A stretch of 64,000 nucleotides of DNA, taken from contig OZ037767.1 in assembly GCA_964035545.1 (NCBI GenBank), forward strand, positions 27,420,628-27,484,627, read 5' to 3'. The notes under the pieces were generated by a model, which saw only the letters and a list, made by a program, of their open reading frames with translations, had not been told where the DNA came from and ran no database searches. This DNA comes from Bugula neritina (taxonomy: Eukaryota; Animalia; Bryozoa). The first letter of the stretch is position 1; every line of letters starts with the position of its first letter. Below are positions 5,490 to 36,555 of the stretch, piece after piece. A program made the position numbers and the translations under genes.

Positions 5490-8553
<3,064 letters not shown>

Positions 8554-8689
8554 TACTTCTGTTAGAGTTGCTTTCCCAACTAATTTACAGAAAGGCTGAA
8601 AATACATATGAATTTAACAAGACCATACAACAATAATGATAAACAAATTATTTACCTCTGAAACTCTCACTTAAATTATTATTAGCGAA

Positions 8690-19131: not shown

Positions 19132-22100
19132 CTAAGGGTTGACAAACGACACCATGATGTAACGAGTACCCCCAGTGGTGGGTAGCCCTTCATGGAAATG
19201 AGTGAGACGGCCAGGGTGCATCAACATCCAACCCTTCCTCAGGCCAACCAATGTGCAGTTGTATCGAATGAATCGCACGCCGCCACCCTACAGTGCAAAA
19301 CATTAAACCAAATCACATACACAGCAACAATTTGGTAACAGTTCCATTGTTTTAGAGTTATCCTTTTATTCAGCTCAATCACGATAATGCTAAACCTTAA
19401 AACCTACTAATACGCGATTTATTCACTTAAATCCGGATTTGGATCAATGCATGAAATTGCATCACAAATATTTGCAAAATCATCGAGGCCTAAGATCAAA
19501 GTGCTGACACTAAAAGTTGACATTAAAAGTTGACCCTAGGCGCTGCCACTCAACACCACTAAGTATATCTAGGTTAGCAGCTCACTTCAGTCACACTGCT
19601 GTAATCCAGACAAATACAGACACTTGTATATATGAATTCAGGTTACTAGCACCACAACAAGTGCAACAACACAACACAACGCTTAACTGTAACTGCTTAA
19701 TAACTGATGACTACTAGCATTGGAGAGTACATGACTAACTGACAGAAACTTGAATGCTACGAGTCAGTAGAAAACTAGGAGTGCATGCGAGTGTTCTATT
19801 GGGTGGACAATAGCAAAGTTTATACCTCGTAGTCTATGTCTTTGGTGTTGAGAGCCATGTTGACCGTGAAAGTTGATGAGTCATGATGGGGGCGGAGACT
19901 CGGTTGCTCATCAGTTCGATATCGAACCACAAAATTCATAATCGCACTCAACTACAAGGACACGCCGGACTATGAAACACTCACAGTCGGGCAAAGCAAC
20001 AATGACACTACAGTGTATACTACCACATTATATTCTAATATATTACTTTATTTCAAATATAAAATACTTTTTGCTTTATTTGGCAAGTCTTTAGTGGCTA
20101 ATATTTTAATTGATTAAAGTTAAACCAATATATCATGAGTGGTATAACTGTACACAGTAGACTTACAGTGCTATGGTAACCCTCAAACACCTTCAGCTGA
20201 ACAGGGTGCACGTAATCCTTTAATAACTGTATCCAGTGGTCCTCCAGTCCAACCTGGTTCATGTGGATGTCACGGGTTGGGACGTTCTCATACCCTCCCG
20301 ATAATCTCTCATCCTATCGACATAACACAGAACATGCTATCATCATTACACGTCTGCTTGATAGAAGACAAGTTTTAATTATCAACTTATAATTTTGGTT
20401 TTCTCTTTATAAACAACACCAGTAATACATAATAGAAACAATGATAAAAATGCTATAAATTGAAGAAGATCCCTACATCATAGGAAGTACCTGCCTCTAC
20501 CTGTACAATTACAACAAGTAGACACGGCGCATACCTTGTTAGTCCCACCAGACCATTTACCAAAGGTCTCCATTGTGTGTATAAGGTCATCACAGTAGTA
20601 GTCGTTAACAATAGGAAACCAGAAAACATCAGTGCATGGCTGTAAATATAGTAGACCTCAGTGAATGAATTACTTCCTGTATAATACTCGTCAAATATTT
20701 CACACGTGCAAGTTCTCTGACAGTAATCATGTGACCCATTAGTAAAAAAGTATATCAAAATGTGTGCAAGTGAAATAATTTGAATACTTATTATGGTAAT
20801 ATATAAAATATGTAAGTTATGTTCTCCTCACCTGTTCCAACTCGTACGACTCATTGACTGATATTTTATAGAAATCTTCATGCAAGTAATGAAGTTCCCA
20901 GTCTAACTTATTGGTGAACTGCTCATGGAGCTCGGGCGCAGCTCTGCTGGTGTCATACGAGTCTGGGTTGATGAGGTGCCCGTAATGCTCCATGTTTACA
21001 ACATGCATAAACAGTCCCTGTAACATTAAAAAACACAGTCTAAAATAAATTATACGACTAATGGCTCAATAAAGTTCAGGAGAAGTAAGGTTTGAATGAG
21101 AAAGAAACTGCAGATACTCACGTGTTTCCTAGCGTTGTAAGCAAAAGCAACATCATAATCCTGGGGAGGAAACATATCTCCCACCTTGTAGGGATTCTTT
21201 GGTAAAAGACTGAGTTTAGATGCTTTAATAAGTTGCAGGCCGGACGTATAGGGCACGTTCCAAACACCCCTGTTGTATAAACGCTAATTAATGTATACGA
21301 CATTTAGAATTTGGTTGTGTAGTAAAACATTGCTTTAAATCAATTGTTTTCTATAACAAATTTGCAGAGACAAAATTATAGCCGACAAAATAAATTCACC
21401 AAAACAACTATTATTTTTATAATTACAAATATTCAATGGTTGAATTTTAAAATGAAATTCTGTGAATCATGAGCTTCTACCAAAACCTTTGTATTTTACA
21501 GCAAATTTTACATTCTAAGATAATCTTTAAATGAAATAAAATTCCCAACAAATTTCAACAATAATTTTGTGAGCGTAAAAGAATCAATTTCATGAAAGAA
21601 TCAAAATCGACATCAAATGTCTTTCCTAGCAACTAATCAGTGACATAAGGTATGGCAAACATGCGTACTCTAAGCTAATTGAGCAAAAACTGTAACAAAA
21701 ATAATAAATTTTTTTCAAGTGACAAATCAACGAGCATTCTATTAGCCTACACAGACGTAAGTGAACATTGAGGTTAAAGCGGACAGATAGTACAACAAAG
21801 GAAGTATCAGCGTTATACCTGATTGCAACTACAATGTTAGTAGATTGATTATGTAAAATAACAGTGTACATCACGCCCAAACTTTAAGAATATTACTGAG
21901 AATTCTAAACAAGTTTAGAAATAATAAACCAAAAAATAAAATGAGAAGTCGGGTTGTATAGAATATAATTTTGCACCTGAAGTACAGAAAGACAATTTAT
22001 ATAAACTTCAAAATCTCAGTTTTGGAATTATGCCAACATGTGTGTGCATTCACATAAAAACTAGTACAGGTTTGAGCTCATGAAAGGGTGACTGCTGACT

Positions 22101-23010
22101 TATGGACACTTATGATGCATGCGATTGTCACAAAACCACAACTTGTACTCTACATATTATTAGTAAATATCTAGAAACACACTGGGAACTACACAAGCTG
22201 TTAGAATGCAACAAACATGCCCAAAACTCAAGTTTCCTCAAAAGCTCGAAGCTATTTCTTAGATCTCAATAGACACAGCCTCTCATTTAAATAAACACAA
22301 ACTAAATTGAGTTCATTTATTAGTGTATAGGCATTATTAACTCTGTCATCAGCTACAGAAGCATTTTCTACATGAGTTAGAATATTTACATTTCTCCCTA
22401 GTCAGACACAACACAAACATCTCACGGACAACACCAACAGGAAATGGAGGTGGGGAGAGACTTACTGCTTGCTGTTTCCTACAATGTCATGATAATCATC
22501 AGACCGCTCGTAATAGTGAGTCCGCGACACTGAGCCCCAGAATGTGGACCAGAAAAACCCTGGCCTCATCAAAACAGGCGCAATCATGGACCTACAATGG
22601 TTTGTTAATAGCATGCGTGTTAATATGATAAAAACTAACACCTCGAGGTCGGAGGAGGCCGCATACTGACTGGTAGGAGCTGTCAGTATGCAGGGAGGTA
22701 TGTGTGACTACACAACGCCAGACTCACATCATTTCATAAGTAACATGATCTCTATAATTCTCTCCCTGGGCGTAGTAGCCATTTTCATTCTTTTCAGCCC
22801 AAAATGTGCTGAAGAGCAAGCCAGGGCGAACCATCATTGGCGTGATACAAGATCTAAGATACATCATCAGTGCATATGAATGCTATTACGAGCTCAATGT
22901 AAAAAATAAACATATACTTGTTATCCTTAACTATCGAGAAATAGCAATAAATTTAAGATAGGATAAATATGAATATAATGGCACAAATATAGATATGATA
23001 CAACATAATG

Positions 23011-23068
<58 letters not shown>

Positions 23069-26000
23069 TATATATATACAGTATAGTATTATTATAAGCA
23101 TGATATATTATAAACACGATATAATATAAATACGATATAATATATTGTAAGTACGATAATATATTATAAATATGATAAACATGATCAAAACATATAAATA
23201 ATTATTATAGCTGAGTGAACTGACTTGTTTAATGATACGAGATGTTCAAGAAGATCAGGTTTAGTAATCTGGGCTACAGAGTCAATAGAGAGGAGATATT
23301 CACATTTCTCATCAATACATTGTTGTCTGCAAAATAAAACACAAAACAATCAATTTATAATTTGTACACACCAAAAAAAGAATATTTCACAGCAAAGAAA
23401 ATGCACAATAAAAAGGAATTTGATTTATATAAGAACACATTAAAATTTGCTATTATTACAGCACATTATACAAACACAGGCACACACAGAGTGCATACAT
23501 ACATGTATATTTATATATATTCTATATTAAAAATAATAATAAGAAATATTATTTTACAGAGCTTTGTTCTTTCCCTCGGCAGCATTTAGTCCCTCAGCGG
23601 AGCTGATGTACTTCATGGACTTGTATGTATCTTTGTTTTTCTCCACCCAATCAGAGACAAGCTTCTCATGATACGCATGCTATAACACGTTACCAATAAA
23701 CTATGACATTTCCACTAGTAAAACATGGCTGCAGAACCTATGCAACTTTGTTGACTAATATAAAACGATGTAATTTGTATCCAGCAGTGATAGAAGCATT
23801 AAGATAATTGAAAGAAATGAAAAATAAAGTTTCTTCTAACCTGGTTATGTACAAGCACATCTAGCTTATCTTTAGGGTACGTTAATGCGTCTAGCCTATC
23901 AAACCAGTGATATAGAAATGGAGTTGTCTCCTCTATCATCAAAGTCATTAGAAGGGTGGGCAACTCCTTGGCATCACTAACGTCTATTATGTTCTTAGTA
24001 CAAGCATTGCATCCGCTAGTTGGAGTCCATGCATCATTTAGATAGGAGACCATCCTATTCAGCTTGTGCTATAGCATAACATTGAATACAAACTCATACA
24101 GCTGAAAAAGTATATATCCATATTTTCACTAGGATGATTATAAACAAGTCTGCATGCACTTTACCCATCATATTCACTCACACTAAACAAGAGCTCCACT
24201 ATCAACTAGGATATATACTACTTTACATTTTGGTAACATAGTTGTTATAGGCAATGAAGTGCAATAGTTTGAAAGTATTTTTTTCATTTCAAAGCTGCAT
24301 AAAAACGCTTAAAGAATGTGTAGGCAGCAAAATTGAATCAGACAAACACCAAAGTGTCAATTTTTTTTATAAAAATAATCAGTAAGCTTTTTAATTGAAA
24401 ACATATTTTAATTCTAAAATGTTATACTATTCAATACAACACTATAATGGAACTGAAACATCCGGAACTATTTTAGTTGGCTGTAAATTCAAATAAAAAA
24501 TAACACTCAAACTCACTTTGATTGGTCCATTCCCATGGATGACTAGAGGCCTGCTCCCGGTACCCACATTGAACAGATAACTCTTAGCATTCTTGTACTT
24601 TATATCAACTTGATCTAGAAGAATGATAAACCCAAGTGATTGTGAGTAGTACAGATGTTTGTGAACTACTAAGTAATACACATGACTTGTTTGGCACACA
24701 GTACAGGGAACTGAGCTTACCCAGTACGCCGTTCAGTGTTTGAAATATAGTTGATCTCTTGTCAAGCTTGATAGACATCCTGTCAATAGCTTCAGCAGGC
24801 GACAGCTTCGGAGCCTCATTCTGAGAGTACATTGAGCCGCCGTGTAACTAAATAGAACACAACTCTGTTTTATAGCACTTCTAACTTACGACAAAACAAG
24901 ATTAAATAAAGTGCATTTTAGCAAAGAAAATTACATAAAGAAAGGATACTAAAATGAGAATAGTTAATTCTTGACCTAGCAAAGCATATACATAGCCACA
25001 CTGGTTAACAAAACACATGTAACACAATGTTGATCAGAAAAAATAATGTAGAAATTGTTTTAAATGACCTAAAAGAAAGGAAAACCAATAATTAAAGCTC
25101 ACTAAATTAAACCTACATTGCTTTGGCCAGGAAATGATATAAGCAGGAAGTGAAGACGGTACAACTTACCTGCAGCTGATACTCATCAATAAAAAGATTG
25201 GTGAAGTAAAGCTGGTCATCATCCGCGTCAGCAATCTCATGATCAGTGAGCAGCTTGTATATAGAGTCAGCATAGCCCATGTAACCTCCAGAATTTAGAT
25301 ATCTCGACTCGCCTGTTCTAACGGGTGGGTACTTTACCTGCGCAATCATGTTATCATTATTCACCAAAGTACAACTATTTTCATGTAAACTGTGATGGAA
25401 GGTAAAGGGCAACTTACATGATTTCTATATTTTGCATTTCATGTGACTGATAAACCATTTGTTTTGTGAATTCAATACATTAAAGCACTATTTACATTCT
25501 AAACTTATGTCACTAGAAATTTGAAATAACATGTGTCCTTAATGGATCTCAGACAACAGAACTTAAGACAAGCTGCAGAGTTTACTAGTAATTATAAACA
25601 TACAGGCATACATATAACCTCCCCTAGTAACTTTAAATCTACTGCTAACTTTGAATGTGCAAGAATGAATATATATAGATTTATAAACACACACCATACA
25701 CACATATGTTACAACACAACATTTATCCAGGTTTAATTATTACCTGTTACTACAATATTATAAGTCCAAGAGACAGTATAATGTAACTAACTATACTAGC
25801 TATCTTGTAGATGTATTGGTAAACTGTTAGGTATGATCACATTAGCCACTTATAGGAACCTTAAAAGCACTCTAATACAGTGTTAGGTATGATCTTACCG
25901 CTAAAGAGGCGTCTGGCCATATAAATACTTCAGCTGAGAAAACCACAGAAGCTTGGAGATCCATAAATGCATCGATTATATTAGACTGACTTCCGTGCAT

Positions 26001-28673
26001 GATGGCGTCATAACTTGAGATAAAAAATAAATTCATTATTGGAATCATGTATGAAAGAAAAGGTCAATTATTACGTTTATTCAAGTAAATTCACTCAATT
26101 TAAAGCAAGACTGGGCTCAGTGCAAACTGCTTATAAAATTGTAGTTATCTAAAAATACAGCAACTTTTCAAACATGCAAAGTAAGAACTGGACACCAGCT
26201 GAGAACAACCAAAGAAGTAGATGTAAAAGAAAATAAACCATGACGACACATCTCATATTTTATTCACTTGTGTAATTCCTTCATTATTTCAATGCTGCCA
26301 TGAACTAGACATGCTGCCTATACCTGTCAGTGATGAGTAGTGCCAAGTCAGTTCTGTCTTTATACTTTTCAACAGCTTTTTTCAAAAGATTAATTTTCAT
26401 TCCTCCACCAGGCTTAGTTTCTATATCACCACCAGTCCACTCCATGCCAACACCAATTGGCTGCAAATGGCACCACAAATCATGTTAAAGTTGTAGAACA
26501 TTGTGATTAGCACATCTTATTTAACACCTAAGATAACCTGAGCCATGACTGACTGGTATAAAGAGTTCTTATAGTCATAACCAATCAACTGAGCTATATG
26601 ATTCCAACTCACAATGGAAGGAATAGTCACACTTTATGGATCACATCAAAGCGGAAGTATAAAGCTATCAATCATTCACTGCGTATAACAATGTTCACTA
26701 ATGGTGATACAATGAAGCGTCTAAATGTAAAAAACATACGCGGTATTCTGTTAAGTAATAATATATAGGTAATACACAATTTATGAAGCTATATTTCTTA
26801 TATTAGAAACCTTTTTCAATACAAATATCAAAATAACACCATAACACATTTATTTTACATAAAAGATTACATTTTTTAGACTGCTATAGGCATCTTAACT
26901 TCAAGAAAAATACTGTGGTGAAAAATGTATAGCTAAAATACAAAACATGCTGCGTTTTCCTGCTCACATGTGTTTTTCTAACATACCCAAACACTTTAGA
27001 AAATCTCGATTAATTATGTAATACTTCTAGTAGATAACGTATACAATTAGTACATTATTAAACTAAAGAAACCATAAAAAGCTATTACTATCAAATATGC
27101 AGTCACTGAAAAATTAATTAAGGAAGTATTTCCATATTTAATGGGAAAATATCTATTCTCAGTTAATCCTTGTTGTTGTTGTTGGCAAGGGCAGTAATCT
27201 CTAGAAAATATTATTTTACAGATGTCATACTAAGACAACAGAATAACTGAATGTTGCGCAAGTTAAGTTGAGTCAATGAAGCATAACAAATGTCGCTGTA
27301 CTTTTTAGTTGAATTTAAGGTGAAGAACAGGAGAAAGTCACGTCTGCAAAACGAAAACCAATCAAGCTTGACGTTTATTTCCAGAACATTCTTCCGAAGT
27401 AATGAAAAACCGCATTTCAAACCAATAAATCATTATCACTAATGTATTAGTTGGTAGACTAAAATATATCTTTATATCAAAGTTTCTAACATTACCTTTA
27501 AACTTCAAACTAAATTTTAAGTTAAATCTCAACCATTAAGTATCAATCGGAGACATAATCCAACACACTAATAGCCTACAACCTGATTATTTAAATTTCT
27601 ATAGCAAAATCTTCCTTTAATCTCACAAGCCACACCAACTACTGTATTCTTTCTTGACAAATTGAAATGTTACATTAACATTGATTATTTGAAATTATAA
27701 ACAACCAACCTCCAGAGTGAGTTTGTGTTGTATAACGGAGGCGAGAAATTGTTGATAGCCATCATGGTTAGCATCAGTAGCCACCGTCATAACAATCAGC
27801 TCTGCCGAATAGAAACATAGTTTTACTACTTTTAGATACTATACAAGACCCAACAATACAAATAGAATTATAGACAGATTTTAAGTTATTATGTCAAAAG
27901 ATTTGGCTGATTTTTGTTGTTGTAAATGTGGACCAATAAAATAAAACGGTTGCCTTTGCAACCTGTAATCTTTAAAAAAAGGGAGAAGATCTCACAAAAA
28001 ACCGTTGTTATAATTAGTAATGAGCCGTAGTAAGCAAATAAACTCAAAATAACAAGATGATTACTTAACATTAATAAATTGCTTTTTACAGAAAAATTTT
28101 CACTCGTAAAAGGTTGTACACTGTTATATATAAAATGAAATAAATGCGTTCAACAATGAACAACCATATCGCACACCAGTATTAAACAACCATAGAGTTT
28201 TTCAATTAAAAATAAATATACTTATTAGCATAGCTAAAAACTGTACTAGTAATGAAAAATTTTTCTTAATGTAAAAATAGCAAGAAATTTTTCGTATTTT
28301 AAATTAATAAATATACAATATTTAGATTATATATTAATGTTATAAGTAATATAAAAAAGAATATATACGTATTATATGCATATATTATGTATATGCATAT
28401 ATCGAGTTCCCATGCATTCACCCTCCAGGGGTTCTTAGTGGGAAACTCCCCCAAACTGAACTGAACTGAACCAGTGGTAAAAATATTATATCAGCTTGGC
28501 AGCTAAAACAATAACCAGGAGCTAATAACTTACTCATACCTATTGTGTGGCTTACCTTGAGGTCTTGGTCTCGAGGTTAAAACCTCACATGTCGATAGGC
28601 TCACCATCACAATTAGCAAATGATAAGCAAAGAGCACGGTGTAAGTATTTAAAAAGTTCCACGTTTGAGACAT
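19132..28673 (-). CDS. PLOD: Multifunctional procollagen lysyl hydroxylase/glycosyltransferase (PLOD/LH3-like)
   Basis: Signal-peptide-like N-terminus (ATG 28673). GT domain [44 protein letters not shown]; accessory domain; LH domain [24 protein letters not shown] (HxD), [22 protein letters not shown]. About 17 coding exons plus one duplicated exon. Confidence 0.95.
22466..22591 (-). CDS. PLOD: PLOD alternative exon B (candidate mutually exclusive exon; closer to family consensus)
   Basis: ttgtag|G...CA|gtaagt, 126 nt, phase 2-2, open: [41 protein letters not shown](Q). Confidence 0.88.
22728..22853 (-). CDS. PLOD: PLOD alternative exon A (candidate mutually exclusive exon; divergent variant)
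   Basis: cttag|A...AT|gtgagt, 126 nt, phase 2-2, open: [41 protein letters not shown](M). Confidence 0.8.
23012..23078. repeat. (TA)n microsatellite
   Basis: Long TA run in the PLOD intron upstream (in transcript terms) of exon A. Confidence 0.95.
28416..28471 (+). mobile_element. Short dispersed element (about 44 bp) with (AACTG)n tail, copy 1; possibly the 3' end of a 5'-truncated retroelement
   Basis: attcaccctccaggggttcttagtgggaaactcccccaaactga matches the reverse complement of 47900-47945 except for C-run length (5 vs 7). Confidence 0.65.
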
Positions 28674-29533: not shown

Positions 29534-29937
29534 ATAATTGTAGAATAACCACATGAATAAATGTCATTTTCAGTGACAGCACTTATTTCCATCATATAAA
29601 TTGGCTTTTGCCACCCGTTGACCGCAACCAAACGTTACTTGTATAATATGTTAGTACTTGTGTAACCGGTTTCTGATTGCAAACAACGCGTCATTGTGAT
29701 TCAGTAATACTAATACAGTAATAGTAATAGTAATTAACTAATTAATTTCAAATTGTTCCATTCATTTGACTTTGAGTTTCAGTTTGTTCTGCTACTAGTG
29801 CTAGTAGTTACACTTACTGTTAGTAGTTAGTGTCTGTGTTTCTACTAGTAGCCAGTAGGAATTACTCTTAGTCACTGCCAGTCAACAAATCCATCAAGGT
29901 CAACGCTAACTGTCAGACTCAGTGTCATAAAGTGATA

Positions 29938-36555
<6,618 letters not shown>

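Follow-up and report, generated by a model that had tools for sequence, protein, structure and literature searches.

The locus analysed here raises the question of whether the lysyl hydroxylase (PLOD/LH) gene of Bugula neritina can, by using one or the other of two duplicated exons, make two proteins that differ in a single segment of the accessory (AC) domain and, if it does, what this exchange changes in the enzyme and how the exon is chosen. [quoted passage not shown] The window (the whole stretch of DNA that was analysed, 64 kb) is part of chromosome 3 of Bugula neritina, which measures 32.42 Mb in the 216.00-Mb assembly tzBugNeri2.1 (PMC11480708).

Two homologous exons of a single PLOD gene and their transcripts

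The preliminary description of this DNA had proposed two tandem minus-strand exons, A (22853-22728) and B (22591-22466), both of 126 nt, in phase 2-2, with AG/GT ends and free of stops, either of which would join position 23225 to position 21269 in frame. Coordinates and translations were confirmed, and the models joined via A and via B each encode 766 aa with canonical splice sites throughout. The features of the gene around the pair are given below, residues being numbered after human LH3 (exon position n corresponds to LH3 residue 411+n, and the swapped segment to human LH3 412-453):

19132..28673, minus strand: PLOD/LH gene, 17 coding exons per isoform, from ATG to stop, 766 aa (local translation and profile matches)
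23225..23326, minus strand: upstream constitutive exon (coding exon 10), with the broken accessory-domain DxD (D-S-V)
22728..22853, minus strand: exon A (11a), 126 nt, derived class (F/Y for W425, A/S for G430)
22592..22727, minus strand: A-B intron, 136 nt, 47% GC, structured, better conserved than the next intron
22466..22591, minus strand: exon B (11b), 126 nt, ancestral-like class (W425, G430, Lys at LH3 452)
21270..22465, minus strand: B-to-downstream intron, 1196 nt, with low-depth RNA contig coverage
21122..21269, minus strand: downstream constitutive exon (coding exon 12), starting with GVWNVPY

Aligned without gaps, A and B are identical at 15 of 41 amino acids (37%) and at 60 of 126 nucleotides. 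The 2 kb between the flanking exons contain 10 AG-126-GT stretches, among which only A and B are open in the required phase. In human LH3, residues 413-449 are matched by both exons, with E=9e-8 for B and E=0.005 for A, and a search of the genome with either exon retrieves only that exon and the other. The segment motif, previously said to occur also in COLGALT-type enzymes, was indeed found in COLGALT1 and in mimivirus R699. These homology searches were run with single exons, one at a time, and the joined model was translated locally. Long bacterial matches to exon A (P0001, P0003, P0010 and P0011) are spurious, the two that were checked being SdrD-type repeat proteins, and a search of the ESM Atlas with exon A gave nothing useful.

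A genome search identified this gene as the sole PLOD gene of Bugula neritina, which removes a second PLOD gene as a source of isoforms. All three domains are present: (i) an N-terminal GT domain (PF25342 matches) whose DxxD and His metal site is intact (DSYD at 115-118 and HGNG at 279), (ii) a central non-catalytic AC domain, whose exons match LH3 413-452 and whose DxD is broken, and (iii) a C-terminal Fe/2-oxoglutarate hydroxylase that retains HxD...H and Arg (H695, D697, H747 and R757 in the local model) and whose exons are 62-72% identical to those of bee PLOD. Judged by these domain features, the Bugula PLOD is LH3-like. It shares the GT-AC-LH layout and the catalytic motifs with human LH3/PLOD3, including in the LH3-COLGALT1 (KOGG) complex (PMC6082870, PMC11897130), but differs from the human situation by the presence of one PLOD gene instead of three and by its broken AC DxD. 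No alternative duplicate of the segment in the human gene is described in the LH3 structural papers (PMC6082870, PMC11897130). Elsewhere in the gene, the start of coding exon 6 (window 24847-24780) encodes about 22 extra GT-domain residues compared to bee PLOD, and the in-frame internal AGs of this exon (24820, 24814, 24805 and 24766) are possible alternative acceptors.

Transcripts were examined in four public RNA runs, taken as contigs over positions 20800-22990; the contigs of the species come from three studies. Since this interval ends before the (TA)n tract near 23010-23083 and the upstream exon lies outside it, upstream junctions were read from the consensus of loose contig ends. Contigs can drop rare forms, their depth is a rough measure, and the sample types are coded. 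At 22853 as well as at 22591, the consensus of the loose ends reads as the 3' end of coding exon 10, at the start of A in four runs and at the start of B in three. The joint of A to the downstream exon is present in all four runs (contig depths of 1058, 578, 248 and 3.9), and B is joined to the downstream exon in X4 (depth 105) and shows loose ends on both sides in X1. All four single-exon junctions that the preliminary description had proposed to count are thus present, and its claim that one invertebrate PLOD could make two isoforms is borne out. No A-to-B joint was found in the contigs of the four runs, though low-depth unspliced contigs span the A-B intron. Each exon is spliced singly to both flanks, and the pair has the length, phase, splice sites and conservation of tandem-duplicated exons.

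By rough per-contig depth and across coded sample types, the A:B balance looks very different between X1, where B looks comparable to A, X2, where a single contig of 896 nt and depth 578 includes A and B pieces lie near 4, and X4, where the ratio of the A to the B joint is about 2.4 to 1. The A path is dominant in at least two of the four runs. Exon A, earlier treated as the doubtful copy, is a major form and not a relic, and the A/B balance seems to vary. Gene models including only the canonical-looking exon B would miss what is possibly the main isoform. A run with another organism label (X14, low depth) shares its variants with the Bugula runs and was therefore not taken as evidence from a further species.

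The A-B and B-downstream introns (window 21270-22727) are covered at low depth whereas neighbouring introns are uncovered. This coverage probably corresponds to unspliced intermediates and suggests that the region is spliced slowly and last, and is possibly detained; DNA or strain divergence is a possible alternative cause. When samples are compared to the reference, the A-B intron shows at most 4 changes and no gaps, whereas over 486 positions of the next intron there are 41 changes together with 33 gap letters (p=0.025 for substitutions). More generally, the divergence of the public RNA runs labelled as this species from the reference amounts to about 3% in constitutive exons and, in the long intron, to about 8% in addition to gaps, a level that fits a cryptic species complex.

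Conservation and origin of the exon pair

When exon A was searched against protein representatives, A-type fragments from other animals were found. Four lineages besides Bugula (L005/L012, L008/L013, L009 and L010/L011/L014) have A followed by B as in Bugula, with the donors GTGAGT for A and GTAAGT for B. Mean identity across lineages reaches 52% between A exons and 59% between B exons, compared to 38% between A and B. The A copies form one group in the tree (support 87/94), and the B copies lie nearer to the single exons of other animals. The comparison of L008 with L013 gives a dN/dS of 0.06/1.32 in exon A and of 0.13/0.53 in exon B; on these values, both copies are under purifying selection. 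The old duplication with selection on both copies that had been proposed from the Bugula exons alone is upheld by the pairs, the tree and the dN/dS values. An assembly artefact or a pseudo-exon is excluded by the RNA junctions, the orthologous pairs and the dN/dS values.

The downstream exons of three pair-carrying lineages are 65-92% identical to those of Bugula, and a tree of these exons groups the three lineages with Bugula (100/98) apart from bee, two other animals and viruses. The other pair-carrying lineages are therefore, to judge from these exons, probably bryozoans. Two animals (L018 and L019) have a single 126-nt exon with the same boundaries and the same phase, which indicates that the exon is old and that its duplication is lineage-specific. 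The homologue searches returned no full-length lophotrochozoan PLOD, and molluscs, annelids, brachiopods and phoronids lie outside the comparison. Overall, we consider it almost certain that Bugula neritina has a single PLOD with a tandem-duplicated AC-domain exon pair, that its transcripts carry either A or B, that the pair predates the split of the five lineages and that both copies are under purifying selection.

Old, conserved and same-length tandem duplicated exons that retune one protein surface, as the Bugula pair might do, are known from NALCN and Cacophony; the main text of the tandem-exon survey that deals with them mentions neither PLOD nor COLGALT (PMC9741552). Another case occurs in the bee Andrena cerasifolii, whose PLOD isoforms X1 and X2 (XP_076684470.1 and XP_076684472.1) are both 734 aa long and differ only at about 593-640. 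Like those of Bugula, these isoforms are of equal length and differ in one homologous segment, which looks like a second mutually exclusive pair. However, the bee swap lies in the hydroxylase domain and the bee AC segment is constant, whereas the equivalent exon of Bugula (20313-20167) is single copy. The two events are apparently independent, and substitution splicing therefore seems to have arisen in PLOD at least twice. Taken together, the bee and Bugula isoforms suggest that invertebrates diversify PLOD by exon duplication and vertebrates by gene duplication.

Other changes were seen around this part of the gene. Coding exon 12 (window 21122-21269) is 71-82% identical among pair-carrying lineages but only 35-40% identical to that of other animals, and has DYDVAFA where LH3 has the DPDMAFC motif; on these comparisons, the accessory domain is remodelled in the pair-carrying clade. 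In an unrelated animal (L006:395-495), the acceptor and the first ~46 nt of the same PLOD exon are tandemly repeated just upstream, i.e., the exon homologous to A/B is partially duplicated. The animal contig L019 carries two PLOD copies, the second of them partial and situated some 4 kb downstream (L019:11137-11622).

Consequences of the exchange for the protein

The accessory domain of bee PLOD was modelled (mean pLDDT 62), with LH3 as the best match of the model; the segment is predicted to start with a strand of the core, continued by a hairpin, then by a short helix and a loop. W425 and G430 are kept in every B exon, and W425, G430 and a basic residue at 452 in single-exon animals, bee, human and viral homologues. 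In all A copies, W425 is replaced by F or Y and G430 by A or S, position 452 is M, L or Q and thus never basic, and Tyr at 450 and Met at 453 are shared. The replacement of the conserved W, G and RS by A, first noticed in Bugula, is therefore found again in the alignment. Position 452 is K or R in B of four of the five lineages and basic in all single-exon animals, bee and human; it is L or V, non-basic, in B of the L008/L013 lineage. Bugula B has both an acidic residue at 446 (D) and a basic one at 452 (K), and B of L009 has Ser at 446.

The role of the PLOD accessory domain has been called unclear in structural work (PMC11897130). [quoted passage not shown] In mimivirus R699, a homologue with GT and AC domains, the head-to-head dimer contact V395/R396 is required for activity (PMC12279948); these residues align to positions 41-42 of the Bugula exon, its last two. 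Bugula possesses a full COLGALT-like gene (G000:C8:6011000-6020500), which encodes a strongly acidic N-terminal loop before the first strand, the sequence of this loop being unlike the human one. On these alignments, B would retain the ancestral contact surface and A would expose another surface with a conservation of its own (Tyr-x-x-Met and absence of a basic residue). Switching between A and B would change the docking of a galactosyltransferase or the oligomerisation of PLOD, and the degree of hydroxylysine glycosylation would then differ between cells while both catalytic sites stay the same, a reading to which we give about even chances. The PLOD-COLGALT complex is known for human proteins only, from which we infer docking in Bugula; furthermore, viral PLOD homologues likewise retain the basic residue at 452, which may therefore be structural, and the differences between A and B span the whole exon, beyond the docking helix.

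This wide distribution of the differences leaves some room, though clearly a minor share, for isoforms that differ not in docking but in collagen-chain recognition or in the stability of the AC domain, F/Y425, A/S430 and the acidic hairpin reshaping a vestigial acceptor cleft. The columns that best separate the two classes, in which every B has W425, G430 and E at 439, belong to the strand and hairpin and not to 446-453; in addition, A generally has more acidic character than B, and the AC domain has been proposed to help collagen recognition (PMC6082870). However, literature searches found no published substrate-binding role for residues of the segment, whose only functionally mapped residues are the COLGALT1 contacts.

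Both exons drift similarly and fairly fast (52% and 59% identity across lineages versus 71-92% for most downstream exons), and both retain R-P, S-x-F-W, Y-Y and the helix Tyr, as would be the case if the isoforms were biochemically near-equivalent and each exon had simply become the only one spliced in some cell type. This is improbable, since A carries fixed changes at three positions that are nearly invariant from giant viruses to human, and its own invariant Tyr 450 and Met 453 in every lineage.

Among the functions suggested in the preliminary description, partner binding is strengthened by the location of E446 and R452 in the segment, and sugar-nucleotide binding comes out weakest. The N-terminal domain of COLGALT1, to which the segment is homologous, binds UDP-Gal, and an accessory-domain loop of LH2b alters UDP-glucose binding (PMC8055892), which could mean that isoform B has kept nucleotide-sugar binding or catalysis in its AC domain and that A switches this off. 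However, the DxD is broken (D-S-V) in Bugula and its relatives, the COLGALT1 UDP-Gal contacts (R61, Y126, K133, W135, V143, R147, D166, D168, H235 and D265) are unmatched to the exon, and the human AC domain binds no metal and no nucleotide-sugar donor (PMC6082870, PMC11897130). Such a catalytic switch is therefore very unlikely.

To return to docking or oligomerisation, the nearest precedent by analogy is the cassette exon 13A of LH2/PLOD2 (LH2a/LH2b), where splicing in the AC domain tunes glucosyltransferase behaviour and dimerisation (PMC8055892, PMC12279948). Exon 13A is a 21-aa insertion elsewhere in the domain, whereas the Bugula event is a homologous substitution of 42 codons by tandem duplication. 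The Bugula pair offers a matched natural pair of proteins in which 42 AC residues differ, in which the difference has long been kept and in which it spans the mapped COLGALT1 contact, i.e., a test case for the AC domain as a partner-docking versus a collagen-binding module.

Other GT25 sequences were encountered. The Bugula genome contains two tandem GT25 genes at G000:C3:21278000-21289000, and no N-terminal GT1 motifs were seen in the stretch of this pair that was scanned. A viral ORF of 859 aa (L025:1330-3909) fuses a GT25 (COLGALT-like) domain to a full PLOD.

Choice between exons A and B

The candidate elements for the choice between the two exons are the following:

22612..22616, minus strand: candidate RBFOX site GCATG, shortly before exon B, with a branch-point-like motif on either side
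22604..22609, minus strand: branch-point-like TTAAC, with its A at -14 from the B acceptor (-14/-15 also in L008, L013 and L009)
22659..22693, minus strand: 12-bp hairpin in the A-B intron, -18 kcal/mol, which buries a branch-point-like TACTGAC
21314..21323, minus strand: 10-nt stretch complementary to 22707-22716, possible docking site, unsupported in other lineages

GCAUG is the binding site of RBFOX (PMC2777236). GCATG is present in all seven A-B introns, where it is the only 5-mer common to the five lineages, and absent from four upstream introns. In the other lineages, it lies 8-30 nt past the A donor or at both ends of the intron, positions ranging overall from +8 to +112 and to near the acceptor. 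Its frequency elsewhere in these loci is 1.3-2.3 per kb, and shuffling gives it a probability of 0.05-0.25 in each intron; by our estimate, chance alone would make about 0.1 of all 5-mers common to the lineages, and the weight of GCATG therefore comes from its being a known splicing motif. An RBFOX gene was found in the genome through its RRM exons (G000:C1:17.14 Mb), a genome search for the Fox-1_C domain being blank. By analogy with the known RBFOX rules, GCATG near the A donor or near the B acceptor would favour A over B. FGFR2 IIIb/IIIc and C. elegans egl-15 5A/5B are, like the Bugula pair, tandem homologous in-frame exons with (U)GCAUG upstream of the repressed exon (PMC2777236, PMC2880598); unlike in these systems, RBFOX control in Bugula is only inferred and the position of the motif varies between lineages.

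The B acceptor has a poor pyrimidine tract. Between L005 and L012, the ends of the A-B intron are invariant and its middle is variable (0/177 versus 26/172 changes, p=4e-9). The folding of this intron is stabler than that of shuffled sequences in the window, in L005/L012 and in L009, weakly so in L010 and L013, and not in L008. In the mechanism that we propose, RBFOX bound to GCAUG in the A-B intron would promote A and repress the weak B acceptor, as in FGFR2 IIIb/IIIc, and the structure of the intron would assist this choice; we regard the arguments for and against this mechanism as evenly balanced.

Three other means of exclusion find no support. Inclusion of both exons (808 aa) and skipping of both (724 aa) are, like the two single-exon forms, in frame by local translation; therefore, the reading frame and nonsense-mediated decay (NMD) cannot enforce exclusion. 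Steric exclusion, for which the donor-to-branch distance, linear or folded, should be under ~50 nt, does not fit introns of 136-842 nt with a branch motif near the acceptor, in which the folded distance is not shorter than in shuffles. Pairing of a docking site with selectors gave significant duplex energies in scattered single cases, never for both selectors in one lineage. Although A+B and double-skip transcripts are in frame, the 136-nt intron with its branch motif at -14 is long enough for splicing and neither a steric nor a docking mechanism is supported, it is very improbable that such transcripts occur at meaningful levels, since the A-B joint is absent from the four runs despite low-depth unspliced contigs over this intron and since a doubled or deleted core strand should, on the model, break the fold.

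Joining RBFOX control to the docking reading, we tentatively suggest, with low confidence, that an RBFOX-controlled swap could turn the assembly of a lysyl hydroxylase-galactosyltransferase complex on or off, one gene then giving a coupled and an uncoupled enzyme. LH2 exon 13A is promoted by FOX2/RBFOX2 and raises glucosyltransferase activity (PMC8055892). If true, the RBFOX swap of Bugula would be an independent parallel to this RBFOX2-controlled exon and would give a regulated role to the 'silent' accessory domain.

Two further observations concern the surroundings of the pair. The intron upstream of exon A contains a (TA)n tract of ~70 nt (window 23010-23083). Two spermidine-synthase-like genes on opposite strands, recognised from ORF fragments (window 5490-8600 and 29900-36000), flank the PLOD gene and G-protein beta genes.
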